From Marsupella aquatica (taxonomy: Eukaryota > Plantae > Marchantiophyta): DNA of 64,000 nucleotides. The DNA lies in assembly GCA_973895155.1 (NCBI GenBank), contig OZ316898.1, forward strand, positions 13,546,330 through 13,610,329. Direction: 5' to 3'. How positions within the stretch are numbered: position 1 is the stretch's first letter; each line of letters begins with the position of its first letter. The notes beneath the pieces were generated by a model. It saw only the letters and a program-made list of their open reading frames with translations. It was not told the DNA's origin and made no database searches. The position numbers and the translations under genes were made by a program. Shown here one piece after another: positions 16,331 to 39,298 of the stretch.

Positions 16331-16690
16331 GTCCACTGTATAGTAAAAACCATCTTGTCACAAATAGTATTGTTGAGTCTATTGTGACCACATAGCTTTT
16401 TCATCACTAGCATCGTTTAATAAGATACCCTTCAACAAATAGAAAACATTGCGTCTGGATCGACTTCTTAGTGCCCCAGGCAAACTGTAGTTTATATAGC
16501 ATTGTTCACTGTATAGCCAAAAACCATATTGTCATCAATAGTATTGTTCAGTGAGTGTGACCACATTGCTTTTTGGCCACTGACCTCGTTATTATTGATA
16601 AGATACCGTTCGAGGAAAAAAGAAAACATTTAGTCCAGATCGACGATGCCTTAGAACACGCGTGTACCTGTCCCCAAACTACTGTAATGC
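16331..16690. repeat. Degenerate ~175-bp tandem duplication, probable TE remnant
   Basis: CACTGTATAG..AAAAACCAT.TTGTCA..AATAGTATTGTT...TAAGATACC...AGAAAACATT occurs twice. Confidence 0.6.
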
Positions 16691-17390: not shown

Positions 17391-17719
17391 TGTCACACCA
17401 TTCTAGGTAGTGTTAGAGTGTATCGTACTATCTAGATCCGTATGTTTGGTATGTGTGCTATATGAGCCGATAAGGTTCCGTCAGGTTTGTGTGAGAGGGT
17501 ACTTCTCACTTGTGAGGCATTGAAAGGTCATCTTTCAATGTTGAGCCTTGGAGAGAGAGGAGCTTGAGTGTGGCTATGGTGACTGTGAGCTCCGCTTGTG
17601 TAACGTGGATTCCTTGAGTAGTGCAAGGTGCGTTGGCTTGACATATGTGTGTGATCGGATCGGTGCGGGATCGATGGGGTATTGTTGACCGGGATCGTTG
17701 TGCCGATTGTATGGAGATT
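17391..17719 (+). repeat. Split repeat A1 (329 bp)
   Basis: Identical by eye to A2 at 38832-39160. Confidence 0.95.
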
Positions 17720-17731
17720 ACATTGAAAGAT
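17720..17731 (+). promoter_or_regulatory. Putative self-priming primer-binding site
   Basis: ACATTGAAAGAT directly after A1 is the exact reverse complement of ATCTTTCAATGT at 17530-17541; no TGG-type tRNA PBS present. Confidence 0.6.
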
Positions 17732-19055
17732 CATGAGCTTCAAACTCTGTTGTGCGGACAGAAGCTCAGTCTGAGTTTGTCGTTGACGGTGACGGTTCGT
17801 GGTAGCTCGAATCAATTGGATTTGTGTTTGACGCGGATTCATGTTTCTTGAATCGTTGGTTCTATTGTTTGAGTACTTTGTTGCTATTCGATCTGGTTCT
17901 GGCCAAGCTTGAACGTTGTTGGATCTGGATCTGGATTGAGTCGGAGTCCAGATCTGGATCTGGAAAGAGATGGCCGAAGGTTGCAGCTTGTATCGCACTG
18001 CTGTTTTGTGGACAGATCTGTTGGAATTTTGAGTGCTCGCAGCGTTTTATTGTCAAGGGGCGCTCGCGAAATGTCCCAGAACCGTGCGCGACAGGTTTGC
18101 AGAGGTCGAGAGCCATCGACGTTGCCGTTTTTGTGAAGGAAATTGCTGCTTTTGAGTGGCAAATGTTGCCATTTCTGAGCCCGACGACTTCTGTTTTGTA
18201 TACACACACAACTGTGCGCGCATAAGGCGACGCATGAGGTCACCCATCCCGAAAGTGCTCCCAACTGCGAGCACAAAGTCACCCATCGCGAGCGCAAGCA
18301 GGCACGAGGTCGAGGTCACCCATCCCGGGGCTATTCCGGGTCGTGAGCGCGAGGGGAGGCACGAGGTCAAGCGCGAGGAGGTCACCCATCCCAGGGCTAC
18401 TCCCAGCCGCAAGCGCTTAACTGGCAAGTTCTCATCCCACCTTATGTACACACAAGTTTTCATAACTTGTTGTTTAGATTCAAGCGCCAGGGGGCTTTAT
18501 ACACTTTCCTGTTTGCTTAGAGCCTTGTTTCGGGCCAAATTAGAGGCTCTTTAGAGGTTTTTGATAGTTCTGAGTTCATCTAAATATACACATTGAACCA
18601 ATTGTGCATGGTTTCTCATCTATAACATTGGGACATCATGAAGCCTATTATGAAGGCCTTTCATTGAACATTATGAATATTTGTTTGATCAATGTGTGAT
18701 CATTCTTGGTGTGGAGAGTTAGTGTTTGACTATTCTTGTTGATTGGATCCTCTCCACACTTGTTTCCTATTTATGCGCCATGTTGGTTCGGTGTGGGCGC
18801 TTGATTCCATAGGAGTGATCCGGGTTTGCAACTGGACATTCTAGTGTGCTGTGTATTTCTCTCCTGGTGATGTTGGAGTGATGCCCAACACACCATGGTG
18901 AATGCTTGTGGTGCTGACAGGGATAGATTGCCCTTAGGGTTAGCACATAGATTAGGTTAGGGTTGGTCACCACAGATTCTTCTGGTGCTGCTGGATGACC
19001 CGATGGACGACGGACCGGTTTCACTCGGAGTGGGGCACAGTTTCGGCCAGCGGCA

Positions 19056-21633
19056 TTGGTAGCAGTCAGCAGTGCAGCTTCAGACAGTGATTCTGATGAG
19101 GACTCAGTGACCAGTTCTCCTCATCATCAGGTGGTTGCCCCTTTGTTGTGGGATATGGACGAGATGTATGGGGCTACAAAGGGCCCACGACGATACTCTG
19201 GTGCAGTTGGCACAATTGATCTGGATGACTTTATCCAGGAGTTTGATACGTGGTGCAATATGCAGACATTGTGTAACGCCGCATTGTTTACCCCTTTCAT
19301 GGCATGGAAGGGATTATTTCAGCATTTGAAGGGGCCACCCATGGATGACTACCATGAGTTTCGGAAGGCTCATTTGGTTGAGATTGAGGCATGGAGGCAG
19401 CATTGTCGCCTAATTACGTGTCCATCACCTATGGCACTAGTGCGGCTGCCCAACCCATTGCCACAGCTGTTGCCTCTTCTAGCAGCACTAGCCAGAGTGG
19501 CACACCATCCACCAGCAGCACTCCAGCAGCATCCACCGCTACTCCTGCCGGTGTGATTGTGACTGGAATTGGAGTTGCGCCAACATTTAACCCTGTGGTG
19601 GAATTCTTTGAGGTACTGAAGCAGAACTATCAGGGTGTGAGAACTGATAAGTTGAAGGGTCTCCAGGAGTTCCAACGCAAGACTGGAGAGCCTACGTGAG
19701 GCATACACACGTATGCGTAGATTGATCACTGTCACCAAGGGAGTGACAGAGGCTCAGGCAGTCCAGTTTTGGTATGCAATTATGGACGAAGAATTGCAAC
19801 GCAGAGTGAGAGATGTCACTCTGCTTAGGGATGCAGATCCCACATTAGTAGTTGTTTTCACCCTTTCTGAGCGCATTGAGCTCAATATGGTGAATGAGAA
19901 GGTGGTGACTTCTGGATTTGCCAAGGAAGCACCAAAGGCTGCATCTACATCCACACCACAACCTACTGCACGGAAGAGCCAGAGGGAGAAGCCTACTACA
20001 CGAGAGTCTACCAGCCAGAGACCTATGCCCTCTTATGCTGGACAACAGTCAGGATGTTGGACCTGTAGTGGGGATCATGCACAGAGATATTGCCCAGATC
20101 ATAGAGGATCAGGGGGAGCATCAGCGCCTGATCAGAGACAGTGTGATCACTGTGGAGCTCCTGGACACACCAAGGATAGGTGTTTCTCACTCCACCCTGA
20201 GTTACGGAGAGGAGGATCCCGTACACATGATCAGGGAAGAGGAGGAGGAGGTAGAGGTGGTGGACGTGGTCGTGGCATGCCACATATAGAGAGACAGGGA
20301 GGTGATGTTGCCCCTGCTGTAACCATAGATCCAAAGGATGCTAAGATTGCTCAATTGGAGCAACAACTAGCTGCCATGGCTAGTTCCCAGGTGAGACCTA
20401 CTTCTGGTGATGGGGCATCAACATCGTATGGACCTTCCACATCCCATGGTCTTTCCACATCTTATGGAGCTGATGGAGACCTTGCCACCATGGGATTCAT
20501 GTGTGGCACTGCACATATTGATGCATCAGCAGCTTTGACACGTGGGGCAGCCAAAGCTCTTGAGCCCCGAGGAGCAGTAGTGGAGTTAGATCCACAAAGG
20601 GGGGATGCATGTCGACAGACAAAGCTTCCTCAGTCTTTTACATTGTCAGAGACAGTTCAGACTGCCTCTATGAACCGGGTTCGGATAAACCCTGATGTGG
20701 GTAATTTGGCAAAAATCAGGTAGTGATGCAGCAGGGATGACAGGTACCTTGCTGGGGGCGGCTACTGCCATGGTACGCACCCCATTATTTTCAGTGACAG
20801 ACATGCTAAACTTGGGAGTTGGTCATACAGAAGTGTTCAGATTGGCAGCTACACTCTGTGAGGACACTCCAGTTGTTGCTTCCCATGCAGAAGCAGCTTG
20901 CAGTGTTGAAGCAGTGAAGACCATGCCACCTACTGCTACTAGTCAGACATGGCATGCAGCAGCAGCGAGATTGGTGGATTTACCAGCACGCCCTGCATTT
21001 GAGAGGACTAGGTTTAAACCTAGTGTTGTGTCATTGGATAATCGGAGTGGTATCTTCCGATTAGTTGGGCCTTTTGGAGCAGTATACCAGCCGGAGAGAG
21101 TGTTACTGGATACTGGTGCTCAGCCCTTGATGTTGGGGAAGTCTGCCATACATGGATTGGGATTGCATCCAGAGGTTTTGGAGAATTGTCCCTTTCCCAT
21201 TCAGACTTCATTGGGGGGACCTACACCTACACAGTGTATCACCAGGAGATCACTTGATTTGAGGATTCAGGAAGGTCATACCACAGATAGCTCACAGATA
21301 CAGGCGCGAGCTATTCTGACTAAGGCAGAGTCATATGATGTGTTGGTGGGATGTACAGTGCTCTACCCCATGGGATTTATTCTTGATTTTTGGGAGGAAT
21401 CAGTGTCATATAGACCTGATTGGCAGTCAGGAGATGCTCGATTGAGCAAATTGCTAGTGAGATTTAGTGGACCTGTGGGAGGCCCTAAATCCACACCATT
21501 GTCTTTGGCAGCATTCAGTGGTGTAATTGCTGGACCTGATGATTTGATTGAGGGTAATGCGCATGCAGCCGATGTTCCACCATTGGAGGAGTCTCATGAG
21601 GAGCACTGTACATCCCACCAACACATCACATGA
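19056..21633 (+). pseudogene. Element 1 gag and aspartic protease (frameshifted, stops)
   Basis: Zinc knuckles CWTCSGDHAQRYC and CDHCGAPGHTKDRC; protease VLLDTGAQP. True start probably slightly upstream. Confidence 0.85.
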
Positions 21634-21849
21634 CTCTGCCTTAGTCAGAATCCTGTTGGTAGTGTTGTGCCACCAGTGTGGGGCACTGCACAAGCCTTGC
21701 CACAGGTAGCAGCATGATTGGTACATGATGCATGGCGTCATGCTTTTACACCACAGTCAGGAGCAGAGCAATCTCTTGCAGATGGACTTGTGACTCTTTC
21801 ATCATTGGATACCACTCCTATTGCTTGGCAATATCCACTGGAGGGTGTT

Positions 21850-22790
21850 TGTTGGATCTTTTTGGTGGGATTAGCACTGGATTGGCTGTTGTTCTTCAGG
21901 CAGGAATTCCTGTGCGTCGTTATTTGTATGTGGAGTCAGATGAGACAGCACGAAGGGTCTCATTGCGACATGTGGCTATGTTGGTGGATAGATATCCACA
22001 ATTGCTGCCAGTGGATGCTGTTCGTGGTTATCAGCATGCACTACCTACTGATATTTCATTGCTGGGGGCAGATCATCTGCATCATGTTGGCCCCATTGAT
22101 TTGGTGATTGCTGGTTGGCCATGTCAGGGCCAATCTAGAGCTGGCGTTGGGCATGGACTTCATGATCCACGCTTTGCATTGTTTTGGGAGATGTTACGGG
22201 TGCTGCGTCATCTCCAACTACATCAGACACAGTCTCCAGCATACATTTTGGAGAATGTGCCATTGTTAGGTGATGATCGTAGTCAGATTGTTGCCAGTGT
22301 TCACCAGGTAAGGTCTTGGATTGGACCTGCTGTGTTATTGGATGCTGCACGTGTGGGTTCTTGTGCACATCGTCCACGCTTGTGGTGGACTAATTTGATC
22401 CCATGTGAGGTGCTGAAGTGAACATTTGACAGCATTCCACGCTCACCAGCCTTAGTGGTGGATGATATTTTGGATCCAGGGCGTCGTGCACAGGGTGTGA
22501 CCCAACCTGATAGACCTCCATTGGCAATGGTCAATGCAGTTGGGTGCCCACGTTGTGCATTACCCACTCTTGTAAGCCACTCTGCTTCATATGCATTCAG
22601 AGCAGGTGGCCCTGGACTTGTGTGGGACACAGCTCTCCAGCAGTTAGTGGAACCTACTGCTGATGAGAGAGAGTATGCTATGAGATTTTTGACTGGCACC
22701 ACTGTAGTTGCCTTTGTGTCAGAGGGTTTGCGGCGCCAGGTTCTTGGTCAAGCAATGGACCTAAATTGTTTGACTTGGATTATCAGCTTG
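21850..22790 (+). pseudogene. Element 1 C5-cytosine DNA methyltransferase domain (DNMT3-like)
   Basis: Motifs in canonical order: I LLDLFGGI, II YLYVESD, IV IDLVIAGWPCQGQS, VI YILENV, VIII HRPRLWWTN, IX EREYAMRFLTGTT, X RRQVLGQAM; one in-frame TGA at 22419-22421. Confidence 0.92.
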
Positions 22791-23129
22791 GGAGTAGCTG
22801 AACAGTTGCGGATGCGCTCTGTTGGAAATACTGATTGTCCCTTGGTGAGCTTGCGGTCCACTAAGACAGTACTGACCACAGCTAGGGGCGAGCAGACAGT
22901 CCATGGACCTATGGCAGGATTGGCCAATGGTGGACAGATTGTTGAGCACGAAGGGACTGCTCAATCTACTGCTAAATAGCAATCATCGGCTATATCTTCT
23001 ACCCTACAAAGAGATATTAGGGATTTGGTGGAGAGTTGGGAACCACAGCTTGGCCCTAAGTTGACAGGGGAGGAGAGATGTCGCATGCATCGATTCCTGA
23101 AGAGTTACTAGAATTGTTTTGCATTTAGC

Positions 23130-24539
23130 ATGAAAGATTTGGGGACATTAAAGGGTCCTGGTATTCAGATTGAATTGGCTAGTGATGCGCCAATCTTTCG
23201 TAGGTCGTACCGTTACAGTGACATGGAGAGAGCTCCGATTCAAAGTAGAACTCAAGATTTGTTGGAGGCTAGATTAGTGGAGATTTCATATGGGGAGTAT
23301 GCATCTGCCACAGTGATGCCAGCCAAGAAGGATGTGCATGGCAATTACACAGATAGGCGCATGTGTGGTGATTACAGACCCATTAATCGCCAGACAAAAT
23401 CTGATAGATATGCCATGCCCACACCTGAGGAGATCTTTGATGCTGTGGGGCATGCAAAGGTTTTCAGTTCATTGGATCTGAGGGCAGGGTACCATCAGCT
23501 TTCAATTAGGCATGCTGACAGGTCCAAGACAACATTCTGAGGGATTGATTCTTATGGCAAAGATCGTTTGTATCAGTGGTTATTCTTACCATTTGGGTTG
23601 AAGAATGCACCAGCTGAGTTCCAGAGAGTCATGGATCGAATCCTTGCAGGTTTGGATTTTGTCAGATGTTATATTGATGATATTTTGGTCTATTCTTCTA
23701 CTGTGGAAGAACATCAGCAGCACTTGCAGACTGTGTTGGAGAGATTGAGAGCACATGGGTTGAAGCTCCATCCTAGCAAGTGTAAGTTCTTCCAAGACCA
23801 GATTGAGTATTTGGGCCACACTATATACCCAGGGGGATTGGGTGTACAGCAGACTAAAGTGGAGGCCATTACACAGATTCCTTGTCCTACTGATGTGAGT
23901 AGAGTTCGTGCATTCTTGGGATTGGCGAGCTACTACAGGAGGTATGTTAAAGGATTTAGCCAACTTGCTAAACCTTTGACCATACTCACTAAGTTGGATC
24001 AGGAATGGATTTGGGGTGATGACCAGGAGCATGCCTTTCAGGAGTTGAAGCAAAGGTTGGCATCATCCCCTATTTTGAGAAGACCCATTTCAGGCAGACC
24101 ATTTCAGCTACACACTGATTGGAGTGGAGTAGGACTTGGAGCAGTGCTGACTCAGAAGGATGATGAGGGGAATGAGTTTGTTGTGGCTTATGCCAGTAGA
24201 TCAAACAATTCAACAGAGGCTAAGTATAGCTCTTATGAGGGAGAGTGTTTGGCAGCAGTGTGGGCTGTTGCACACTTTTGTTGCTACTTGTTTGGTAACC
24301 CCTTCACCTTGATCACTGATCATCAGCCTCTTAAGTGGTTAATGGAGTCTGACAAGCTTATAGGGAAGCTTGCACGATGGGCATTGTTGTTACAGGAGTA
24401 TGATTTCCAGGTGGTGCATAGGCCTGGAAAAGTGAACTTGGATGCAGATGGATTAAGCCGCAATCCATGTACCAGTCAGCAAGATGAGACTGGAGCCAGA
24501 TGGCATGATGAGTCAGATAAGGAGATGGTGCCAGGATGA
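23130..24539 (+). pseudogene. Element 1 reverse transcriptase and RNase H
   Basis: RMCGDYRPIN, LDLRAGYHQ, LPFGLKNAP, YIDD; RNase H TDWS...YEGECLAAVWA...TDHQPL...DGLSR; TGA at 23538-23540. Confidence 0.95.
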
Positions 24540-25870
24540 CATGCATCTGCCTTTCTTTGTTGGGTGCCAGTATACAATGGATCTGTGGACTTTACCTCAT
24601 TGGATGGAGTGGATGATGAGTCTTCAGATGTGGATGTTGGTGAGGTAACTTTTGGACAACAAGATATTCACAATGATGTGAGAGTGTTGGAATATCTGCG
24701 CTGTGGTTCTATTGTTGGCAGTGTTGATGCCAAAGAACATGACAGGGTTCTACAAAGAGCCAAGAGGTTTCGATGGGAGGGAAACCATCTTTTGAGAGTA
24801 CTGCATGATGGTAGGGTGTTGGTGGTACCAAAACCATCACAACGAGTACATTTGATGCGACATGCACACGAGGAGTTGGGTCACTTTGGTGTGAAGCGCA
24901 CTTATAGCTTGCTGCAGACACAGTATTGGTGGCGTGGTATGCACACTCATGTCCAACAGTTGATAGCTAAGTGTGTGGTATGCGATAGAGTGAGAGCATT
25001 ATTTAATGCTCCCATTCCCCAGTTGCACCCGTTACCGATCATGGGTTTGGGATATCGTTGGAGTTTGGATTTTGCTGGTCCATTACCTCTTACCCAACGC
25101 CATAATCGGTATGTTTTGGTCATGGTGGAGCACTTCTTCAAGTGGATTGAGCTAGTGGCGTTGCCAGATAAAGCCAGTGGAGGAGTTGTTGCTACATTTT
25201 TGGATCGCGTTGTCGTGATTTTCTCTTAAGTTATAAAAAAATTGTTTGTTTTAATATGCTATAGATTATATAAGTAATTTAGTAGTTAGATTATTAAATT
25301 TAAACTTTATTAAACTTCTTTAGCTATATTAACGGACTATAGTAGTTCCACCAATGCATATGAGTAGTTCCACCAACTACAATAATATTCACCAACGCAT
25401 AGTAGTTCTACCAACGCACAGTAGGTTCACCAGCGCATAGTAGTTCTACCAACGCACAGTAGGTTCACCAACGCATAGTAGGTCCACCAACGCATAGTAG
25501 TTCCACCAACGCATGATAGTTCCACCTACTAAAAGTAGTTTCACCAACTATGAACAGTACTAGCACACTCTTAGGTATTAGATGTTTGACACTTGGCCTT
25601 CATCCAAGTGCTTGGGCTTGATCCATGCCCTCTTGGTGTGCACTATAAATAAAGTGGTGAGGGGCACTCTCCCCTCATTCCGCAGTGTTTATCATTCAAG
25701 GGTGTGAAGCTCTTTTGTGCCTTGAACATAGTAGTGGGGCGTCCTTTGGCCCGGATAGCAAAGGAATGAGTGGTAGATTTATAGATGGGACCTTAGGGAA
25801 TAAGGTTTCTTTGGGAATATAGGGGTGGGGCGTCATTTGGCCCGGATAGCAAAGGAATAGGAGAGCCATC

Positions 25871-26086
25871 ATGAATCCAGGAGAGAGAGTTATCCCTGAT
25901 CTTCCCCTTCGTAATCCGTTTTTGATTATAGTTTATCTTTTAGACAAACCATCTATGAGGCAATATCTAACCTATCATTTTGGAGCTCAGTTTGCAACTG
26001 CTGTTATGGTTTCTAACGAGCCAATAATATACCCAGTGGTGTCGTACCGAAAGGAGTGGGAGTGCATCATCTTTGTCTTTTATTGA
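25871..26086 (+). CDS. LTR-encoded microprotein type A (71 aa, unknown function)
   Basis: Ungapped similarity to ORF 37805-38014 (13/48 identities: K..RQ...HFG..F...V..S..P...P...Y...W). Confidence 0.7.
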   Translation: MNPGERVIPDLPLRNPFLIIVYLLDKPSMRQYLTYHFGAQFATAVMVSNEPIIYPVVSYRKEWECIIFVFY

Positions 26087-26090
26087 AATC

Positions 26091-26296
26091 ATGGATCTGA
26101 ATAGGAGTCCGGATGATATTCCTGTTTCATTTTCTCTTGGAGATATTAGGATCATATATCGTAAGAAAACTAATTTCCGTGATGTGTTGGTCCGCAAGTA
26201 TGGTGAAGTAGGGTTTAATAGTATTTTAGTTTCACCTGAACCTTTCTTATACCCACTACCCTTGTTACTAGAATTATCATTTTGATTTTAGTGTAG
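26091..26296 (+). CDS. LTR-encoded microprotein type B (MDLNRSP..., ~65 aa; probable 1-bp deletion near C-terminus)
   Basis: Similar to ORF 36533-36736 (shared MDLNRxP; 14/36 identities in core). Current frame stops at 26285; restoring the A seen in the 3' LTR copy gives PFLIPTTLVTRIIILILV*, matching the homolog's hydrophobic tail. Confidence 0.7.
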
Positions 26297-26372
26297 AACT
26301 TATGAGCATGCAAGGTTAACTTCAAAAGAGCCAACATGCTCTTGCCAGAAAACAAGGTCACCCGGACATAAG

Positions 26373-26390
26373 TGGCGACCATACTGGGGA
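26373..26390 (+). promoter_or_regulatory. Element 2 primer-binding site, tRNA-Arg-like
   Basis: TGGCGACCATACTGGGGA 4 nt after the 5' LTR; resembles the complement of plant tRNA-Arg 3' ends. Confidence 0.7.
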
Positions 26391-26513
26391 ACCGCTGGAT
26401 TTGGAAGTTAGTTTGTGCATATTTGAGTTCTAATGGATGAAGAGAAATATGGGTTGGAACTTTGAGTTCTTAACTTGTTTATATTATTAAGTCAAGAGGG
26501 AAGAATTGCAATC

Positions 26514-29078
26514 ATGGGAACTGAGATGAATCCAACTGACATGGAGAGGTTTTCATCCTTGATTGCTGCTTACTTACATGGAATGAAGGAGAAGGAGATG
26601 GAGGAGAACAAGAAGAAGGAGTTGCTTGGTAGGACCACGAAGTACCTATACTCGGTTCTTACCAAGCAAGGAGAATTTGATGGGCGAAATGTAACCAAGT
26701 ATCTCAAGGGGTACTGGACGGAGGCTACAATTCATAAGATTGATGCAGAAGTTGCAATCAAGGAGTTTGTATCTTTAGTAGAACCTGAACTCAAGGGAAT
26801 TGTTACTACCTTGATAGATGGAGCTACTGGGGAGAAAGCATGGAAGGTCTTTGAGTTGAAGATGAAAGAAGAATTTCAGCTTGAAGATCCAGATCGAGTT
26901 ACTCAAGCATCTTTCCTTGATTGGGTGGCCGATAGAAGCAAGAAGTTGGGACCTCAAGAACTAATAAGGGAGTTTACGAAGAAGTTCAATCAGCCTCCTG
27001 AGATTGGTTCTGAAGTTATCAAGGTACAGAAGGCTACTTTACTTATCCGAGCTGCTGATGAGAAGCTTCAAGACGAGTTGGAGCTTGCTCTGGAATTGAT
27101 GAACCGAAGTCGTGGAGCCAGTCCACCAACTTGGGAGGAGATTGAGATTGCTGTGCTTAGGGTCAGCCAAAAGCATAGAAGAAAGAAGCTGAGTCATGAA
27201 GGTGCTCTACATGCGGTTGCACCTGTGACTTCTATGAGGAGAATGGAGAAAATAGAGTCAACAACTAGTAGGGGTGAGAAAAGCATGGACAAAATGGATG
27301 AGTTATCTGAACTCATGAAAAATCTTACCATTCTTGCCACCCAAGCCTTCGAGCAGATGGGAGGAGGTGCATCAAGACTAGCGTCAAGAGGTGGTCCAGG
27401 AGCCGGGAGTTCCATTGGCGGAGCAAGGAGTTGGAATTGTATTTGGTGTGATAGTAAGGAGCACTCAAGGCGTGAATGTGGGGAGCTTTCTGTTGCTCTG
27501 AGAGAGAGAATAGTCAAGTTCATTGATCATGATGGCATAAGAAAGCTTGCTTATCATGATTCAGGAGAGCTTATTCCAGTAAACACAAACAAGGGCGGTA
27601 TGAAGGTGTTGGTGGAGAGAAGAATGACTGAACATCATACTTCAGCCATTGCAGGAGCTTTTGGAGATCAGGATGAGCATGAAGCAGATGTTTACACCCT
27701 CTTTGGGAGTTCTTCGTCAATAGAGACAGACAAGAAGAGACTAGCAGAGTTTGTAAGGAGGAAGTCAGATTGGAGTGATCCAATGTTGATCTCTTCTTTC
27801 ACTGCAGAAGTGGGATCTCTATGGGATTCTATGGTAGAGGAGAAACGAAAGTCATCGGAACCTTTGGAAGAACGTGCCAAAGGAAAACAAAAGGTTGAGC
27901 CTGGACCCTCTATTTTGCAGCCATCATCAAGAGTCCCAACAAGGAGGAGTGTTCGATTTGAAGATAGAGGAAGTACAACAAAGGAGCCTACTTCGACTCC
28001 TTCATCCTCAAAGGAGATGGAAGTGGTAAAAAAAGAGAAGGTGGAAAAGAAAGGACCTGGTTGGGTCCTTGGAAGAGATGTTGAGCAGCACATTGCGTAT
28101 GATCAAGTTGCTGAGAAGTTTTGGAAAGCGGAGGTGAGCGGAGTCACCAATGAGGATTTTTTTGCTTGCATGAACTCCAAGGCTCAAGATGCATTACTTG
28201 CAAAAGTGAAACGAAAATGATTTTACAAGGAAGGACCTCATGCCTTGGGAATGGAGGTTTTTTCTGATGTTGATGAAGATGGAGAAGGTTCAATTGTTTC
28301 TCAAGCCAGTGTGGAGTGTGAAATGTATCAAGTGAATGCGGAGAAGATCCCTAGACCACAGATGCTAGGGTCTTCAACAAAGGAAGTTCCTGAACCAAAG
28401 ATGTCAGGAGTTGAGGTATTGGAGAGGTGGAAACCATTGGCGAAAGCAACAACAGGATTTGCAGTGACCCAGGATATGACAAAAATTAGTCGTGAAGAGG
28501 TGCTCAAGGCCTCACAAAGTGTGTGGGTCATGTGTGCTTCAGCTATGAAGAATCTTGATTCAGGAGACGACAAGGAGTCCATCTTGGAGCCGTTTTGGGC
28601 AAGAACTTGGTCAGTTGTGGAGGTAGAGCTTGTAGGAATGGAGGGCAAAGCTCGAGCATTGTTTGACACAGGATCTGAGGTGAATCTAATGTCAAGAAGC
28701 ATCTATGATCTTGGGCAATGGATGATTGATTATGATACTCAATGGTCTGTCAACTCAATCAATCGTTCAAAGAATATGCTTTGGGGAGGATGCCCTGGAG
28801 TATCAGTGAAGGTTGGCCATGTGATAGAACCAACTAACATCTTTGTGCATGATAGCTTGCCCTATGATCTCATTCTAGGGCAGCCTTACATTATTGAAGC
28901 TCGAATGGAGTACAAGGTCCTACCAGATGGCACTCATATGACAAAGGTAAGGAGTCGGGATGAATTGCGGGTTATCCAATTTCCTGTAGTGAAACCTGGA
29001 CATTGGAGGAATCGGAAGGAGTTGAAAGGACCTGAACCCAAGGAAGGAAATGAGGATTTCTGGAAGGCGTCTCGTTAA
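26514..29078 (+). pseudogene. Element 2 gag-protease (in-frame stop at 28218-28220)
   Basis: CCHC knuckle CIWCDSKEHSRREC; protease ALFDTGSEVN...DLILGQP. Confidence 0.88.
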
Positions 29079-32000
29079 GCAATGCGGGAGGGCGGGGCGC
29101 CATCGCCAATGACCCGTTGGTGACTTGGAATGTGAATAGTTTGTTGGCAAGCTCATTTGAAGGTGAAAGCTTGCATTGTCGAATTTCTTATGTGAAAGTG
29201 TGTGAAGCTACTAAAAAATTCAAAAAGAAAATTGCAAGGATTGAGGATACTATGCAAATACATGGATTGCTAGAGGAAAGTGAAGAGATTGAAGGCCTTC
29301 TAGATGAAGAAGGAGTAGAAGTGTTTTTGAAAGAAATAATTGAAGGTCTTTCAGAGGGAAAGCTCATATGGAAATCAATCATGAGCTGTATGGCGAGTTG
29401 TCTCAATTTGTTGAGGTCAACACCAAGTACAAAACAGTGGAAAAGAAAGTGAGACCAGCAGCAATTCCTTTACCTTTGGATGCTAGGGAGATTTTGGAGA
29501 AGGCAGGTAAAGAGACCAGTCTTAGAGATCAGACTAAGATTGGCCACAAATTCACGAAGAAGACCCTTAATCAACTAAGGATTGGTGATGATGGGTTGCT
29601 GACAAAAGAAGAGAGAGAAGAGTTTCAGCAAATGATTGGTGAGCATGGTAAGGCTTTTGCCTTTTGTCTTGAAGAGATGGGATGTGTGGATCCTAGTGTT
29701 GTTACTCCTATGGTAATTTTCACTGTCCCGCATGTTCCTTGGGACTTGAAACCCATTCTAGTGCCCAAGGCTTTGTTACCTAAACTTATTGATCTATTAA
29801 AGGAGAAGCTTTCCACTAGGATTTTGGAAAGAACAGATGCACCTTATTCTAATCGTTGGTTTACTATTCGTAAGAAAAATGGTAAACTTAGATTTATTCA
29901 GGACATGCAACCACCTAACAAGGTTACTATTCGCAATACTGGAATAGGACCTATAGTAGATGAATTTGCAGAAGAATTTGCTGGTAGAGCCATCTATTCA
30001 TGCGGTGACCTCTATTCAAGCTATGATCAGTTTCAGTTGGCTCAGAGTAGTAGAGATATCACCACTATGAGGACACCTTTGGGGCTACTTCGCATGTGTA
30101 TCTTGCCTCAAGGGGCAACCAACTCGGTGGCTCACATGCAGAATGCCATGAATAAGGTATTACACCGTTTCATTCCAGAGAAGACACAACCATTCCTTGA
30201 TGATATGCCAATCAAGGGATGTTTGGAGACAAAGAAAGATGAGACTATACGTGAAGATGACTTGCGACAATTTGTATGGGAGCACATTCAAGATGTGAAA
30301 GCAATCTTGAAGAGGTTGATTGAGGTTGGGCTCACTCTTTCTGGTGAGAAATCTTCATTTGGGCTTCGTGAAGTCCTAATTGTAGGACAAATTTGTGGAG
30401 TTGATGGGAGGAAGCCAAATGGAGGAAAAGTAGATGCAATCAATCAGATGAAAGATTGTAGGACAACTTCGGAGGTGCGAAGGTTCCTTGGTGCTTGCTT
30501 GTTCTATAGGATCTGGATTCCTCACTTTGCACATATTGCTGATCCTTTGGACGGATTATTGAGGAAGAATGTGCACTTTGTTTGGACAGAGGCACATAAG
30601 GAGGCTATGCAAAGGTTAAAGGAGGCCTTACTTAGCCCCCTTGTTTTACGTCCCTTATGCTATGATGGAAGACCCATCATTGTCACTGTAGATTCAAGTC
30701 CTGATGCTGCTGGATGGGCGGTAGGGCAGGATGATGAGGAGGGGAGAAGATTTGCAGCAAGGTTTGGAGCTAAGATCTTTTCAGCAAGGCAAAGGCATTA
30801 CCCTCAAATCAAGCGAGAGTTGTGGGGAGCAAGGATAGCCTTGTGTCAAGAAAAAGTCTACTTGATTGGAGCACAAGTCATTCTTGAGACTGATTGTTTA
30901 CCACTTTTAGGGATGATTGCTAACTGTGATACTCCAGACATTGCTATGCTACGTTGGATAGCTTTTATTAGGATGATCAACCCCGAGCTTCGACACATTG
31001 CTGGAAAAGATAATCCAGTAGCAGATATGCTTTCAAGAGCCCGCTATGATCAGAATGAAGTGGAGGCAGTTCAAGTGATGAATGGAGAGTTTGAGGTCTT
31101 AACATTTCGAGATGAGCTCTATTTTGGAGAGTTGCTCTTGATTGGAAGGTACCTTAGTACTCTTCAAAGGCCTGTTGAAATGATAGAAGAGAAGTTTCAA
31201 CAATTACGAAAGAAGGCTTACAAGTTCATGCTCAAGGATGGTGTTTTATGGAGAAGGTCTTTGAAGAAAGGACATGTTCCTTGTAGAGTTCTTGATACAG
31301 ATGAAGAGAAGAAGAGAGTCTTATGGGATTCTCATGATGCTGTTGAAGCAGGACATCGAGGAGTTAGAGCTACCTATGAGCGGGTTCAAAGGTGGTACTG
31401 GTGGTCAGGCATGTATGTGGATATAAAATCCTATGTTGGATCTTGTGAGAGTTGTCAGTATTACTCTAAAGTTTGGTTTAGAGATGAACTTAATCCCACT
31501 AGTCCTCTTTCTTTACATTTTCAGTGGGCAGTAGATGTGGTGCACATGCCATGGGGAATTAGGGGGGGCAAAGTACCTTGTCCTTGCAAGAGAAGATTTA
31601 TCTTCTTATGTCGAAAGAAGGGCTTTAACCTCTAACACTACAGAAGCAGTATGCAGGTTCATACTTGAAGACGTTATAGCACGTCATGGTTGTTTTGTGC
31701 AAATGAGAGCAGATAGAGGAGAGCTGAATTCTGAAGAGGCTACAGAATTTTTCGACTGGTTCAACATCAAGCTCAAACTCACTACTGCCTACAACCCGGA
31801 AGGAAATGGAAAGATTGAGCGAGGGCACCCACCGATAGTGAATGCCTTGGTGAAATCTTGCCAAGGAAAACCATCACTTTGGCCCAATCTTCTACCATTT
31901 GCTCTTTTGGCAAATCGAATGACATGCACTACCACAACAGGAATTACGCCTACCGAATTAGTCTCTGGACATTTGCCTTTGATGCCGATTGAGGAAAATG

Positions 32001-32456
32001 TTCAGAGTTGGAGGATGATTGAATGGCAAGATAGAATCTCCCGAGAAAAGTTGCTGGAGCGAAGGATTGAGCACTTTAGCCAGACCAAGGAGAAGATTGA
32101 TGAGGCATTACTAAAGCTAAAGGAGGCTCGTGAGAAGAATAAGGAACGATTTGACAAGACCCATCGTTTGAGACCAATTCCCATCCAGAATGGAGATTGG
32201 GTCTTGATCTATGAGGGAGGGTTGGAACAACAACATTCTACTCTGAAGAAGTTTGCACATCGTTGGAGAGGATCATTTGTGATGGAGGAGGTTCGTCCTA
32301 ATGCAACATATGTGGTAAGAGAACTTGATGGAGCAATTCATCGCAATCCCTATGCAGGGAAGTGAGTGAAATTATTTAAACGACGAACTCGATTTGTGAC
32401 AAAGGAAGAGTTTGAACCCGACGACTATGGGGCTTTAGATGAAGAAGACATGTAGC
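29054..32456 (+). pseudogene. Element 2 pol (RT-RNase H-integrase), frameshifted
   Basis: GKLRFIQD, GDLYSSYDQ, LPQGATNS, FLDD; RNase H TVDSS...KRELWG...ETDC...ADMLSR; HHCC; WAVD...RADRGE...GKIERGH. Confidence 0.92.
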
Positions 32457-32508
32457 GATTCTAGGTGTGGTGCATACCGGAGGATGCACAGATTTGGTAG
32501 GGGTGATG

Positions 32509-33312
32509 TGTCGTGATTTTCTCTTAAGTTATGAAAAAATTGTTTGTTTTAATATGCTATAGATTATATAAGTAATTTAGTAGTTAGATTATTAAATTTA
32601 AACTTTATTAAACTTCTTTAGCTATATTAACGGACTATAGTAGTTCCACCAATGCATATGAGTAGTTCCACCAACTACAATAATATTCACCAACGCATAG
32701 TAGTTCTACCAACGCACAGTAGGTCCACCAGCGCATAGTAGTTCTACCAACGCATAGTAGGTCCACCAACGCATAGTAGTTCCACCAACGCATGGTAGTT
32801 CCACCTACTAAAAGTAGTTTCACCAACTATGAACAGTACTAGCACACTCTTAGGTATTAGATGTTTGACACTTGGCCTTCATCCAAGTGCTTGGGCTTGA
32901 TGCATGCCCTCTTGGTGTGCACTATAAATAAAGTGGTGAGGGGCACTCTCCCCTCATTCCGTAGTGTTTATTATTCAAGGTTGTGAAGCTCTTTTGTGCC
33001 TTGAACATAGTAGTGGGGCGTCCTTTGGCCCGGATAGCAAAGGAATGAGTGGTAGACTTATAGATAGGACCTTAGGGAATAAGGTTTCTTTGGGAATATA
33101 GGGGTGGGGCGTCCTTTGGCCCGGATAGGGTAGTGGGTATTAAGAAAGGGTAGTGGGTATTAAGAAAGGTATCTGAACCTTTCTTAATACCCACTACCCA
33201 CTACCCTTTTACTAGAATTATCATTTTGATTTTAGTGTAGAACTTATGAGCATGCAAGGTTAACTTCAAAAGAGCCAACATGCTCTTGCCAGAAAACACG
33301 GTCACCCGGACA
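32509..33312 (+). repeat. Element 2 3' LTR (804 bp); microprotein region deleted and replaced by a hairpin
   Basis: Colinear with the 5' LTR except about 25850-26235 is missing; inverted repeat at 33148-33199. Confidence 0.9.
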
Positions 33313-33585
33313 GCGTACTCAGTCATTTTGGAGCACCAGCTGAGGTGTTGGCTGATCAGGGAACTGAGTTCCGTGGAGAGTTTGAGAGTTTGTGTGAACA
33401 AGCTTTGATTGATCATCGTACTACCTCTCGTGATCATCCTGAGGCAGATGGATTAGCTGAGAGAGTTGTGCAAACTGTGAAGAGAGGATTGCGTAAGTAT
33501 GGCTTGCAGGTTGGTCATCTGGGAGATTGGGATCTCCAGCTACCTTGGTTAGCTATGGGCTACCGTTTCAGTCGGCAAGCATCAC

Positions 33586-36140
33586 TGTCACTTGCCTATC
33601 CAACGATTAATACTTGCAAACCGTACTTTTCTTCGCTTAAACCGTTGGTATCGTATTACGGGGTCGTGGAGGGACGCTATTTGGAAGATTTTCACACCTA
33701 AGGATGAGTATGTTTGATTTCGCTCCCGGAAGTGTACTTTTTGATCAAGTCTACTGACTGGTCTCTCCGTTTTTGATCAAGTCCAAGGGACTGGTCCTAC
33801 TATCTACAACTCATGCCCACCGGGTGAGTGCTGTCACCACCCCCCTCTCCTGGGCAAGCATACAAACGTTTACAATAAGGTTTGAACACTAGTGACCAGG
33901 GCAAATGTTTCCACAACGAAACCGACCACATGCACTGGGGAGGAAAACAAACCACACAAGCAACCACAAGTGACACACAAAATATTGAAACCTCAAGCCA
34001 AATCCATATCTCTTGGTGTTTCCCGTAACACATGCAAGGACAACCCGGCCTCCTGCCGTCTGCCCAACTCCTGCCTCCCGGGGACAAGTGCTACGTTCTC
34101 CACCTCACTACTCTGGCTTGAACTTCTCCTAATCGGTGCGCTACTCACAAAAGCTACTCCAAAGCATCCAAGCACTACGCTGAGTTCCCCCCTTACAACT
34201 TCGGGGCTCTCCCCCGAAATACCGAAAAACCACACCAAAGCACCCATCGTGGGATCACAACGATGGCGGCTACCCTAGCGGCGCCGCTAAAACCCTGCAC
34301 TAAGAAACCCCTAAACTAAAAGCATGCGGCACACACATGCTTCTAAAACCCTAAACTAACTATGGGACCGACGGTGCCTTCGACGGTGCCCCAACATCGC
34401 TCCGTGAACCGCGAAAAATGCAAGGGACCCCACAATGGCCGAAACTAGGTGCCCTTCCACTTTCACTTCTGAGTTCACCCCTGGATAGCCCTCCTCCTCC
34501 TGATCATGAATCACTCAACCGCTCTTGAAACGGACATCGGACGACCAAGTTATGGCCGTTTTAGTATCCCGTAAACCTAACTTCGTCGGGCCCTAACTTG
34601 CTCATCCTGGCTTCGTTTGAGGAGCGCCGCCTCTTGTTGGAATAAGCTCCGCGAGCTCTTTCCATCAAGCCCGTGAGTGACCCCTCAAAAAAAAGTTGGA
34701 AAGTCAAGGGGCCGTACAACCACGTCCGTACGACCACCCTAGTCCTCCTCATCCTCACTCATGGTGCCATGGCTTGAGCCCCGTGAGTTGGTCTCCTCAT
34801 CAGTTCTCCTCCTCCTCACTCACGGTGCCCTGGCTTGAGCCCCGTGAGTTGGTCTCTCCTCATCACTCTCCATTGGAGTGGTATGCTAAACAAGGACTCA
34901 CTTGAGTCCACCACCGGTCCGTTGTAAAAGGAGGGGGCCCCTATAATTGTCGAAACTAGAATTTTCTCAGAATTCACTTCTGAAAACATATCTGAGGAGC
35001 CCTCTTCTTCCTGATCACGGCTCCGTAAACGGTGCACAAAACGGAGGTCAAACGGCCAAGATATGGTCGTTTAAGTTTTCACGGGGCACCGTCTCCCTCC
35101 GTTTCGTCCGTACAACACCACGGGACCCCGGTTTTGCAAAAACATGGATCACGGTTTCCCCGTATGTGCTGCTACCTCCTCCTTCTCTTGCAAAGCCGGG
35201 ACCTCCTTCCGTACGGACATCCGTACGGCCTCAAAACTCCCGTATTCTAAAAAAAAATGCGATCGGTTGTATCTCCCCCGTCTTAGCTCCGTTTTGGCCG
35301 TGTGACACATCGTTGGATTCAGCTCGGCAAGCTCTTTCCAACAAGCTCGTAGACTCTTGATTTTGAGATGGTCGAAAATCTGATGTTCGTACAACCAGGG
35401 TCCGTACACACATTGAAAGCAAGCACAAGAGGGAAAGGGTTTAGGGTTTAGGTATGGATGGAAACCCCACAAGTGAGAATAGAGAAAAAGGGAAGGTGTG
35501 AGGGCCCCTTCTACGGTGGGGAAGGGAAAGAGAGCAAAAAAACATGTGAGGACCGCACAAAGGGTGAAGGGGAACACAAGTGTGGGAACCCCTTCCTTCT
35601 AAGGGCCCTCCCACCATCACTACTCCAAGATTGTCTAGTTTGCCGTTTTACGGGCATTGAGGTCCCTTGAGATGTCACTGTTTGATATAGACCTAAAATC
35701 AACTAGAAAACCTCAGTTTCGCATGGGGCTCATTAAGGGCTTCAAAATGAATCCAAACATGATCATGTTTGGAATAGTACTAGCGCAGCAACGTCTGTTT
35801 TAAGTTTCAATGTTTTCTATATTTTGGTCATTCTTCCCGTTTTGCGCCTTACGTGGAGCCTCCGACCAGCCCCCACCCCTCCAAGATGCCCACACCTTGC
35901 CTCCAAGTCCCTGGGCTGCCTTGTGGCCTCCTTGTACCCCCTCAATGGTTCCCTTGTCATCCATCACCGCCCGACACCCCTCTCAACTCCGGCCTCCGGT
36001 TGTCGCATCCATTTCTTAGAACTAACAAAAATAAAAAATTTGAAAATCCAAACACTTTTACTACACCTACTTGTCTTTCTACTTATATACGTAATTATAA
36101 GTCATCACTAAGTTACTACCGGGTTTGGGGCCCTGTCACA
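33586..36140 (-). mobile_element. Nested solo LTR (element 3, 2555 bp), probable Gypsy type
   Basis: TG...CA ends; 5-bp TSD ATCAC (33581-33585, 36141-36145); no coding domains. Orientation inferred, not certain. Confidence 0.82.
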
Positions 36141-36532
36141 ATCACTTGCATCCTTCTCACCTTACTTTTTGCTCTATGGTAGAGAGTCAGATTTGCCAAC
36201 AGCTATTCGTCGTGATGCTGCACTAGTTGTGAACTTGGATGATCCTGATGTTTGGGTCAAGGTGTGTTCAGAGAGAGCACGGGTATTTCAGAGAGTGATG
36301 CCCATAGCTTTAGACAACCTTGCCATTGCCCAACATCGTGATACTTTGAGGTATGCCACTATTCGTGGAGGAGGTTACCGTGCAAGCATTCGACGATTTC
36401 ATCCTGGTGATTATGTTTATTTGCAGCAGACAGCACCCACAACACTTGATGTGACCGCTGTCATGAAGTTCATGGGCGATGTCGGGAAAGCCCGGGCTTC
36501 TGTCTGTCGGAAGAACAATGCGCTACGACGTG

Positions 36533-36736
36533 CTAATAAAACACTACGATCATTATCCGACATCGTTCAATTGTCATGGGAACAACGAATGGAATCGGGG
36601 ATGAAATAATCATGGTATATGCCGACTCCCCAAAGTTTCTGATGATGAAGGCTCGAAACTCAGTTTTTTGGCGACATATCACCTGAACATTACAATCTAT
36701 ACTAAAATTAGGCCTAGGAACTCTATTGAGGTCCAT
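36533..36736 (-). CDS. LTR-encoded microprotein type B (67 aa, MDLNRVP...)
   Basis: Homologous to the ORF starting at 26091; intact ATG-to-stop frame. Confidence 0.7.
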   Translation of the reverse strand: MDLNRVPRPNFSIDCNVQVICRQKTEFRAFIIRNFGESAYTMIISSPIPFVVPMTIERCRIMIVVFY

Positions 36737-37804
36737 CTTGTAATTCAGAATCACGGTACAAGCTTCTTGAACATAGGAAATTCACCTACGGTTGTCAATT
36801 TCCTTTGTATCATATCAAACAAGCCAAGTATTTTCTATCCTATCATCCCTCAAAGGTTCGAGTCAAAACTCTATCTCCATCAACAGGTACAAAGAAAAAT
36901 GGTGGACCTATCTAGATTGCAGGCTACGAAGACCCTGTCACCGTCACCATACTATATATCTCACTTAAAGATAGATATACCCTCAAAATTTTTTCCTAGG
37001 CATGACATAGCTTCTTATCTATTTCCAGGAAAAAAATTTAAATATGCATCTTATTCTAGGAAAATATTATAAGCAATATTCAAACTCAGAAAAATATGGT
37101 TCTATTTGAGCATAATCTAAACCTTCAAGTCATCATAACTTTCTAGCATTATACCAAAATCAAGTGATTCCAAAAGCAAACTTGGTGTGCTCATCAAGGT
37201 GATCAAAGTTAGAATACTATTTCCCTAAGAAAAATATATCATAATGATTTCCTATATAGTACAACCTTTACTATTTAATAACTTTCTAACAATGTCACAT
37301 CTCTAGCTTCCAAGCACATTCTATGAATTCTTATACTCCCCACACTATTCTTGCACATAAGTTTGGAATAACAAAGAAACTCACCATGCCACCCCCAAGG
37401 GGCAGGCCTCTTATTTATAGTGCTTTGGAGGGGTAATGACTCACCCCTTTGGTACACATGGTCCAATAATATTTGAACATGTAAACAACAAGGTGTTTGG
37501 ATGCTATTGGGCATGTTTCCATGCGTATCCTCCTTTCGACACCTAATTGGCCATGTGTTTGATTCTAAATGGACATGCAACCATGCAAGGCCTTTTTACA
37601 CATGTATGCCACGTATCCCTATATATTTTGCTATGTCATAAATTTAGTGGAAAAGTAAAGCCCCCTAGTAGGCCTATACTCTAGTTTATGATAATTATTC
37701 ATATAGCCCACAATACTTTATTTAGAAGTGCTTTGTCGTCACTCTAACCCATCATAGGATGCCTAAATTTTGTAACTAGGCATGATGAATCACCAAACTA
37801 GCTA

Positions 37805-38014
37805 TTATGTTAAAATATAAAAACATATAACCCACTTATGTGTATATGTAAGCGTGGGTAAGAACAAAGGTTGAGCGGATTCTTCAACCTCCCGAAGGAA
37901 TCGCACACCAAAGTGATGCACGATGAATTGCCGAAAATGAACTTTCTCCATAACCTGGAACTGAAATTCAACGTGATTTGGAAATCCAACTGGCGCCCCG
38001 TGCACTCCATCCAT
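37805..38014 (-). CDS. LTR-encoded microprotein type A (69 aa)
   Basis: Homologous to ORF 25871-26086; intact ATG-to-stop frame. Confidence 0.7.
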   Translation of the reverse strand: MDGVHGAPVGFPNHVEFQFQVMEKVHFRQFIVHHFGVRFLREVEESAQPLFLPTLTYTHKWVICFYILT

Positions 38015-38682
38015 TGTTGCTTTCTTGCCTTAGAGTTGTTGCCTCCTCCTCTCGTTCCTCGTTTCTTTATGAATCGGCAACCCGCTACAAGCATAGGTAC
38101 CCGACTTATGGTCTTATTTGTCATCTTAAGTCGAGATGTTGCAAACCCAAAATATACCCGTGTAACTTAGGTGTACTATTTGCACCAAAGTTACCACGAC
38201 ACCGCAGGCCGGACAATCTTACGTGTGCGTGAAGTGTTGCCTTCTGGTGTCCTGATGTTGGAGGGACGCGATGGTATGGTTTGGAAGGATCATGTGCGCA
38301 ACTGTGCACCATGTCACCTTCCCAACATTGATGGTACAGTAGATCCAAGCTTGGCACATGTTCGTGCTGGCTTGAAATGTATGTTGTGTGGATCTGCTCA
38401 GGGAGCAGCTACTATGTTGATTTGTGATAAGTGTTCTAGAGGATGGCACATGTCATGTTTGACATCACCATTGCAGGTGATTCCTAGTGGATCATGGTTG
38501 TGTCCTCAGTATCGGTGAAGCCGACTAGTTATCATTTGTGTTCTCTTGGCAGATATGGATTGCAGGTAGGTGATCGATGGGGCTCACTTGCACCCGACCT
38601 CCTGATCTTCACACCTAAAAAGGTGTATATCAACCTTGTAGAACTCATGGCTAGCTAGAGTTAGGGGACCTTACTCCCAGCT

Positions 38683-38691
38683 AGGGGGGCG
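38683..38691 (+). promoter_or_regulatory. Element 1 polypurine tract
   Basis: AGGGGGGCG directly before repeat B1, downstream of the polyprotein stop. Confidence 0.7.
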
Positions 38692-39298
38692 ATTGTGGGT
38701 TTTGGACATGTGTGGACATGAGTTCCACTTGTATTCCATTCTCTTGTGTTTGTGATGTGGCAATGTGACTATGTGTGGATGTATGTGACAAGCGATGTAT
38801 GTTGTGTAGCGATGTGTATGCGCACGATAGCTGTCACACCATTCTAGGTAGTGTTAGAGTGTATCGTACTATCTAGATCCGTATGTTTGGTATGTGTGCT
38901 ATATGAGCCGATAAGGTTCCGTCAGGTTTGTGTGAGAGGGTACTTCTCACTTGTGAGGCATTGAAAGGTCATCTTTCAATGTTGAGCCTTGGAGAGAGAG
39001 GAGCTTGAGTGTGGCTATGGTGACTGTGAGCTCCGCTTGTGTAACGTGGATTCCTTGAGTAGTGCAAGGTGCGTTGGCTTGACATATGTGTGTGATCGGA
39101 TCGGTGCGGGATCGATGGGGTATTGTTGACCGGGATCGTTGTGCCGATTGTATGGAGATTATTGTGGGTTTTGGACATGTGTGGACATGAGTTCCACTTG
39201 TATTCCATTCTCTTGTGTTTGTGATGTGGCAGTGTGACTATGTGTGGATGTATGTGACAAGCGATGTATGTTGTGTAGCGATGTGTATGCGCACGACA
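38692..39298 (+). repeat. Split repeats B1 (38692-38829) - GC - A2 (38832-39160) - B2 (39161-39298)
   Basis: B1 and B2 are 138 bp with 2 differences; A2 equals A1. Confidence 0.95.

Follow-up and report, generated by a model that had tools for sequence, protein, structure and literature searches.

How can a retrotransposon be joined to the DNA of its host through a site that lies inside its own long terminal repeat (LTR)? In the standard view, retroelements with a DDE integrase insert the tips of a linear complementary DNA (cDNA), and the circles that carry one or two LTRs are dead ends. The question is raised by a locus of the liverwort Marsupella aquatica, situated in a stretch of 64,000 nucleotides that we call the window. 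Positions 17391-39298 of this window are occupied by a Ty3/gypsy-type retrotransposon whose repeats are split into two blocks, A and B; the copies of these blocks (A1 and A2, B1 and B2) are arranged around the body of the element (int, between A1 and B1) in the order A-int-B-GC-A-B, and the whole is bounded by 4-bp target-site duplications (TSDs). Here, we examine this copy and its relatives and suggest that such an insertion probably results from a cDNA whose two tips were first joined, head to tail, and which the element's own integrase then opened at an internal palindrome, with the LTR left permuted relative to the integration ends.

The element reads along the forward strand. It opens with A1 (17391-17719), which begins with the left integration end TGTC and comprises the distal U3, R and U5 of the LTR used in reverse transcription. 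The body closes with the polypurine tract (PPT) AGCTAGGGGGGCG at 38679-38691; this is followed at once by B1 (38692-38829), the proximal U3 up to the right integration end, by exactly the two bases GC, by A2 (38832-39160) and by B2 (39161-39298), which terminates in the right integration end GACA. A1 and A2 are 100% identical and B1 and B2 99%, B1 ending in GATA where B2 has GACA. The TSD CATA stands on either side, at 17387-17390 and 39299-39302. These positions, already proposed in a first-pass annotation of the window, proved exact both by repeat finding and by direct reading. The A+B unit of this copy thus starts with TGTC and ends with GACA, as does a separate, contiguous A-B unit of the same family on the same strand at 894-1299; as the latter has a TSD of its own (ACTC, at 890-893 and 1300-1303), ends of the integrase type are confirmed at two independent sites in the window.

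Which segment serves as the LTR during reverse transcription is indicated by the priming signals. The G-rich tract AGCTAGGGGGGCG, or a close variant of it, ends exactly at the start of B in every copy examined. On the other side, the 10-17 nucleotides that follow A are in most copies the complement of a motif at the centre of A, which always lies just before a conserved TGAGCC. In the window, the predicted primer-binding site (PBS) occupies 17720-17731, directly after A1, and is a 12-nucleotide perfect complement of 17530-17541, the putative self-primer motif at the predicted 5' end of the transcript; the position of the PBS is common to 23 copies. In the best cases, the window pair included, the observed length of complementarity was reached by none of 2000 shuffles. 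From one lineage to the next the two sequences change, yet complementarity is preserved: ACATTGAAAGAT after A and ATCTTTCAATGT within it in the window, ACTTCAAAGAATGAG and CTCATTCTTTGAAGT in Calypogeia fissa (locus L001), ACTCAAAGAACT and AGTTCTTTGAGT in the metagenome family, ACTCGAAGAACTG and CAGTTCTTCGAGT in Marchantia, a 16-nucleotide pair in the intact relative L019, and again different sequences in the intact relative L087. The site after A is thus a predicted PBS of the self-priming, Tf1 type. A tRNA-type PBS, sought by eye in a TGG-starting stretch about 80 nucleotides downstream of A1, was rejected, for it lies outside the repeat boundary and is unlike a tRNA 3' end. A PPT that abuts B and a self-priming complement placed right after A together locate the start of U3 at B and the end of U5 at A, so that the LTR is B-GC-A; the proposal to this effect in the first-pass annotation is upheld by the adjacency of the PPT in every copy and by the covariation of PBS and motif. 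Hence the element possesses the TG...CA termini (TGTC...GACA) and short TSDs expected of its kind, but it is not flanked by two identical LTRs that run from the PPT side to the PBS side: the LTR is B-GC-A, whereas the integrated element runs from A to B.

Such an order could be an accident of a single copy, and its recurrence in relatives is consequently of some importance. The reverse transcriptase (RT)-RNase H open reading frame (ORF) of the window element has its best match in a protein of the leafy liverwort C. fissa (80% at the amino-acid level); further matches were to many metagenome contigs and, more distantly, to Closterium. The relatives fetched were the C. fissa locus, 80 metagenome loci, and loci of Marchantia polymorpha and other assemblies; their repeat order was read by self-comparison and by the mapping of A and B. 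The counts of repeat order cover family insertions with a readable 3' end, and L007 with L072, and L028 with L029, were each counted as one insertion. The order A-int-B-2bp-A-B was found in 16 independent insertions: the window copy and 15 others, namely C. fissa L001 in a chromosome-scale assembly (TSD ATGT), ten loci on metagenome contigs of bryophyte type (L002, L007, L028, L038, L046, L052, L063, L064, L065 and L076), an aberrant version recognized by repeat mapping in L049, and all three Marchantia copies sampled (L083 with TSD GGTT, L088 with TSD CCCT, and L089). In L083 and L088 the repeats are 96-100% identical; L089 is interrupted by an assembly gap. In the M. polymorpha assembly GCA_009936355.2, copies are situated on chr4 at about 10.23 Mb and on chr6 at about 12.33 Mb. 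Perfect 4-bp TSDs (CATA, ATGT, AATT, TCTC, AAGG, GGTT and CCCT) flank all seven full copies in which both ends can be read. The Closterium locus (L091) showed no terminal repeats within 10 kb and so has no bearing on the order in the Zygnematophyceae.

One could suppose that the element is a conventional one, with an LTR of structure A-B, that was rearranged after insertion or wrongly assembled; A-B units with classical TG...CA ends and a TSD, such as that at 894-1299, do exist. We give this explanation almost no credence. The same order, with exactly the same adjacency of PBS and PPT, recurs in the 16 independent insertions, in several species and in long-read assemblies; moreover, B directly follows A1 in none of the 23 copies with a readable 5' end. 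Conventional identical LTRs in relatives had been named beforehand as an observation that would overturn the arrangement, and no conventional LTR pair was found around any RT of the family among the loci examined. The arrangement also came through the recommended check of the assembly, since its presence in long-read chromosome assemblies of two liverworts, C. fissa and M. polymorpha, makes mis-assembly untenable. Rearrangement and assembly error are thus effectively refuted. In an older M. polymorpha assembly (GCA_003032435.1), a run of N falls exactly between A2 and B2 (L089, about 16050-22037), which illustrates how this repeat order defeats short-read assembly.

What enzyme, then, has joined these ends to the host? 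The coding region of the window copy, all of it on the forward strand, is interrupted at several places. Broken gag-like ORFs without a Pfam match (19056-20723) occupy the position that corresponds to the N-terminal part of ORF1 in the intact L019. They are followed by an aspartic protease region (20695-21633), whose match to Asp_protease_2 is weak here and clearer in L019; by a DNMT3-like cytosine-5 methyltransferase domain split over two ORFs (21732-22979; PF00145, E = 1.6e-10); by reverse transcriptase and RNase H (23130-24539; RVT_1 and RT_RNaseH); and by the integrase zinc domain and the start of the DDE core (24564-25210; Integrase_H2C2 and rve). The core is interrupted by a nested insertion and continues, when read across the insertions, at 33317-33585; the C-terminal region of the integrase (36146-36458) aligns to positions 12118-12428 of L001, and the PHD finger of the relatives lies near here. 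The intact relatives L019, L086 and L087 contain two ORFs separated by an in-frame stop, the first encoding gag, protease and DNMT, and the second RT, RNase H, integrase (zinc domain and DDE core) and a PHD finger; at the integrase C-terminus of these three the chromodomain is absent and the PHD finger is found instead. The Pol order protease-RT-RNase H-integrase of Ty3/gypsy elements is recovered by Pfam from the window ORFs and from L019. The methyltransferase sits between protease and RT (21732-22979 in the window, 976-5082 in L019 and 7904-9628 in L001); PF00145 was matched in all three, and in L087 the domain has DNMT3A and DNMT3B as its best solved-structure matches. This content of gag, protease, DNMT3-like domain, RT, RNase H, DDE integrase and PHD finger places the element with those named "streptophytes (Gypsy-DNMT3)" in a recent preprint (bioRxiv 10.64898/2026.05.21.726589). 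It is a Ty3/gypsy-type retrotransposon of the streptophyte Gypsy-DNMT3 kind and a liverwort member of that group.

The integrase is of the DDE class. Both the HHCC zinc domain (Integrase_H2C2) and the DDE core (rve) are matched in the window and in L019; the L019 integrase aligns with those of prototype foamy virus (PFV) and Ty3 at E values of about 1e-21, PFV being its best solved-structure match, and its acidic residues occupy, in these alignments, the positions that we take to be the three catalytic ones. The obvious competitor is integration by a tyrosine recombinase of the Ngaro, PAT or DIRS type, either supplied in trans or overlooked, and the repeat order is indeed typical of such elements (de Mendoza et al., 2018; PMC5890265). 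Nonetheless, TG...CA ends with 4-bp TSDs are the signature of a DDE integrase, and no tyrosine recombinase (PF00589) was detected in the window ORFs or in the intact L019, L086 and L087. The ORFs that fill the intact relatives match only the protease, DNA methylase, RT/RNase H, integrase and PHD families, apart from one relative with an additional sub-threshold RdRP_1 match over the RT region. Recombinase-mediated integration is accordingly most improbable, and the earlier description of the element as one with a DDE integrase and without a tyrosine recombinase holds for the window and for the intact relatives alike.

The two junctions in the repeat region allow the argument to be taken further. 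The first, between B1 and A2, is the palindrome GACA-GC-TGTC, which in the window (38826-38835) has decayed to GATA-GC-TGTC. Its spacer is 2 bp long in every copy. It is GC in the window and in L046, L064, L065, L076, L083, L088, L089, L024, L087 and L090, and the intact form GACAGCTGTC is retained in L024, L046, L064, L076, L083, L087, L088, L089 and L090; in older copies the spacer is AC, GT or AT, all of them transitions of GC within CAGCTG, which fits the decay of methyl-cytosine at CHG sites. We also considered, and rejected, the possibility that the spacer derives from the target site: it is unrelated to the TSDs and its variants are all transitions of GC. The core CA-GC-TG has been retained across lineages that share only about 35-45% amino-acid identity, GC-rich alga-like contigs included, and this retention between distant lineages points to selection on the site.

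The second junction, A2/B2 (39160-39161 in the window), brings the end of U5 against the start of U3. In the window its sequence is that of the A1 end fused to the B1 start, neither gaining nor losing a base, precisely as had been predicted from a blunt joining of the cDNA ends. It is base-exact in most copies, the exceptions being L038, with one additional PPT base, and L007/L072, with 17 additional nucleotides and a PPT-derived CG. Variants of this sort typify cDNA tips that have been end-joined and recall the 2-LTR circle junctions of retroviruses. Because B2 lies outside the cDNA that the predicted transcript would yield, the A/B junction would have to be made anew at each insertion.

From these structures we infer where the transcript starts and stops, that the cDNA is closed, and that the integrase cuts the palindrome; the cycle may be envisaged as follows. 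Transcription would begin midway along A1, at the self-primer motif, traverse the body, B1 and GC, and terminate in A2. The RNA would fold back with its 5' end on the site after A and so prime the minus strand, as in Tf1, and the plus strand would be primed by the G-rich tract that precedes B1. The finished linear cDNA would then be (B-GC-A)-body-(B-GC-A), with tips (ATTGTG... and ...GAGATT) that are not integrase ends; head-to-tail joining of the two, in a 2-LTR circle or at the equivalent junction of a concatemer, would form A|B. At one CA-GC-TG palindrome the integrase would next nick each strand 3' of CA, the nicks being 2 bp apart, and the opened linear form would carry recessed CA-3'OH ends and 2-nucleotide 5' overhangs like those of a normally processed retroviral end. 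In established integrase chemistry, an end of this form is the normal substrate of strand transfer. Strand transfer with a 4-bp stagger would produce A-body-B-GC-A-B between 4-bp TSDs, and this full form alone would keep the terminal redundancy needed for another round. The shorter A-body-B form could originate from 1-LTR circles, from the cutting of both palindromes of a 2-LTR circle, or from later recombination between B1 and B2, and A-B units such as that at 894-1299 from the cutting of both palindromes or from recombination between A1 and A2.

The shorter form is in fact common. At about 17 independent loci the order is A-int-B with nothing after B; their 4-bp TSDs are perfect in six instances (TGTT, TACA, ATTA, TACA, TTCA and ATGC) and imperfect in three more. 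Might A-int-B be the primary product, made by two internal cuts of a linear cDNA or from a 1-LTR circle, and A-int-B-A-B the rarer side product? The shorter form is at least as frequent (about 17 loci versus 16), possesses TSDs, and is no older than the full form on the RT tree. But a copy of A-int-B lacks the second R and the distal U3, so that no complete element can be regenerated from its transcript; each of the three sampled Marchantia copies has the full form; and the A|B junction would still require joined cDNA ends. We therefore regard this alternative as quite unlikely. On the RT tree the A-int-B copies are interspersed with the full copies (9 label changes, against 10.1 expected from shuffles) and have end branches of similar length, which indicates that they are by-products and not a separate lineage. 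One near-identical pair situated at different loci consists of a full copy and an A-int-B copy.

Two relatives have more complex repeat regions. In L049 (3361-3878), B-GC-A is followed, exactly at the end of U5, by an inverted copy of A positions 1-180 and then by flanking DNA; the inverted copy opens with the PBS sequence and closes with the TGTC end in inverted orientation. This looks like a plus-strand strong-stop DNA that snapped back on the self-primer motif, after which the inverted A end took the role of right integration end. In L084 (8590-18801), a distant relative that carries the DNMT domain, several LTRs are arranged in the form A|B-A-int-B-A|B-A...

Several considerations weigh against closure of the cDNA followed by a cut at the palindrome. 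All steps of the mechanism are read from the structure of copies already integrated. The canonical retroviral circle has 4 bp between CA and TG, and we know of no retroelement integrase shown to cut at a spacing of 2 bp. All of the A-int-B copies could have arisen by recombination between B1 and B2 after insertion. The window copy itself, with its identical A1 and A2 in an element that is broken and carries nested insertions, was probably mobilized in trans or homogenized, and the contigs with a circle-like or tandem-like structure (L085, L087 and L090) may be products of assembly. Finally, the same product would be obtained if a linear concatemer of head-to-tail units were cut at two consecutive palindromes.

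This last point defines the main rival, a linear concatemer formed by template jumping of the RT or by the joining of cDNAs, which is topologically equivalent to the circle and would leave neither the integrated product nor the A|B junction any different. Head-to-tail units are all that the contigs L085 and L090 contain, as such an intermediate might lead one to expect. Yet the units of L085 and L090 hold a single LTR and no A|B junction, and they may be assembled circles; and the A|B junctions that contain filler or additional PPT bases look more like end joining than like templated jumping. We consequently assign the concatemer only a small chance, and continue to prefer closure of the cDNA and a single cut at the palindrome.

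The two contigs merit description in their own right. L085 (1-20469) and L090 (1-18357) come from different metagenomes and distant lineages, and both consist only of head-to-tail units, without host flank and with one B-GC-A per unit; the unit is 11,535 bp long in the former (99.99% identity) and 8,262 bp in the latter (99.5-99.8%). Tandem arrays, circles that the assembly turned into concatemers, and artefacts are all conceivable. A segment of L087 (8505-9528) that reads pol-PPT-(B-GC-A)(B-GC-A)-PBS-leader was considered as a 2-LTR circle and was not counted, since a short-read assembler can traverse such a loop. A more speculative idea, which we think improbable, is that the closed form, be it a circle or a head-to-tail array, itself serves as a template, transcription around B-GC-A yielding the terminally redundant RNA, and that the element is partly episomal in the manner of a pararetrovirus, with integration through the palindrome being facultative; the family would then be a living intermediate between Ty3/gypsy and the Caulimoviridae, and L085 and L090 would be molecules of this sort.

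The window copy has had an eventful history since its insertion. Three later insertions inside it were found from the sequence and by comparison with L001, and when they are subtracted from the 21.9-kb span the element proper measures about 9.5 kb. The first, at 25211-33312 on the forward strand, is an unrelated conventional Gypsy element with LTRs at 25211-26368 and 32509-33312, a tRNA-type PBS and the TSD GCGT, and so provides an example of normal LTR architecture in the same window; as a conventional sister family of its host it was rejected, because the two share only 24% amino-acid identity and its PBS is of the tRNA type. The second (33586-36140) is a TG...CA unit with the 5-bp TSD ATCAC. 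The third (36459-38201) is a unit of the form TGTCATG...CACGACA with the 4-bp TSD CCGC; the ends of this 1.74-kb sequence resemble those of the host family, it shows no other similarity in our data, and it may belong, as a unit of A-B type, to a related family. Despite the broken ORFs and these three insertions, A1 and A2 remain 100% identical, which suggests that an RNA already defective was mobilized in trans, that the nested activity is very recent, or that the repeats were homogenized. The protease-DNMT region also contains a 51-nucleotide inverted repeat (21313-21363 and 21601-21651, 98% complementary, 237 nucleotides apart), probably a local inverted duplication. Elsewhere in the window, tandem repeats unrelated to the element occur at 56131-56487 and 59762-59991 and consist of six copies of 55-62 bp and a 102-bp pair. 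The first-pass annotation was silent on the nested insertions, on the methyltransferase domain and on the self-priming nature of the PBS.

Its author knew of no description of such an element, a statement that now requires qualification. De Mendoza et al. (2018) reported KnitGypsy-Dnmt3 in the charophyte Klebsormidium nitens, and the legend of their Fig. 4c already assigns it a DIRS repeat structure with Gypsy domains (PMC5890265). The repeat order had thus been described; a mechanistic account was not found there, and the available portions of that article's text and supplements do not mention the ends, the TSDs, the priming sites, the palindrome, A-int-B forms or a mechanism. Our literature search revealed no further paper that uses the name KnitGypsy, and searches that combined split direct repeats with Gypsy or integrase returned tyrosine-recombinase papers only, without the mechanism proposed here. 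The priming sites, palindrome, TSDs, junction variation, by-product forms and circle-integration model therefore appear to be undescribed.

If our interpretation is correct, its implications extend beyond one family. An old and widespread streptophyte lineage has an integrated structure that is not derivable from linear cDNA tips, and this points to closed cDNA as the productive substrate and to an attachment palindrome that the element itself encodes. In it, the disputed cleavage of circle junctions in PFV and the human immunodeficiency virus HIV-1 would find a natural counterpart, and the tyrosine-recombinase elements a DDE parallel. The DNMT3-like enzyme and the PHD finger link this unusual route to chromatin-directed functions. 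In practical terms, LTR finders will mis-annotate such elements, for instance as a solo LTR plus a fragment. M. polymorpha, a transformable model plant with copies whose repeats are 99-100% identical, is a system in which the model can be tested directly.

Partial parallels are known from other systems. In IS3, IS911 and IS30, abutted ends with a 2-3 bp spacer are the substrate of a DDE enzyme; these are DNA transposons, in which flanking DNA supplies the spacer and the junction is formed when the transposase acts on the donor, whereas here the spacer is encoded by the element and the circle would come from reverse transcription. The Caulimoviridae, relatives of Ty3/gypsy, have circular DNA and a terminally redundant RNA; they have no integrase and no obligatory integration, and are primed by tRNA. 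The Ngaro, PAT and DIRS elements share with our family the split direct repeats A-int-B-A-B, which imply a closed or permuted intermediate, but they employ a tyrosine recombinase and generally make no TSD, in contrast to the DDE integrase, TG...CA ends and 4-bp TSDs found here.

The closest counterpart in content is KnitGypsy-Dnmt3, which has a DNMT3-like domain inside a Gypsy Pol and the order A-coding-B-A-B; it is reported there from K. nitens only, whereas the present family occurs in liverworts and carries a C-terminal PHD finger (PMC5890265). No K. nitens protein was present among the 42 matches to the DNMT region; the likeness is one of domain content and repeat order. In its predicted priming, our family resembles Tf1/sushi and the plant Tcn1 clade, where the complement of the PBS right after U5 is an LTR motif and not a tRNA (PMC6317226, PMC2864245), self-priming having been predicted for the Tcn1 clade as well (PMC6317226). 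The likeness is one of the priming site; those elements have conventional LTRs and usually a chromodomain, in place of the permuted LTR and PHD finger seen here. For the cut itself, the nearest precedent is retroviral: the integrases of PFV and HIV-1 have been reported to cleave palindromic 2-LTR junctions (PMC1180852, PMC1905944, PMC4372172), and there, as we propose for the liverwort element, circular DNA is opened by a DDE integrase at a CA...TG palindrome to give integration-competent ends. In the retroviruses that palindrome consists of the joined cDNA tips, has a 4-bp gap and belongs to a side path; in the Gypsy-DNMT3 elements of liverworts it lies inside the LTR, has a 2-bp gap, is separate from the joined tips, and the route through it appears to be obligatory.

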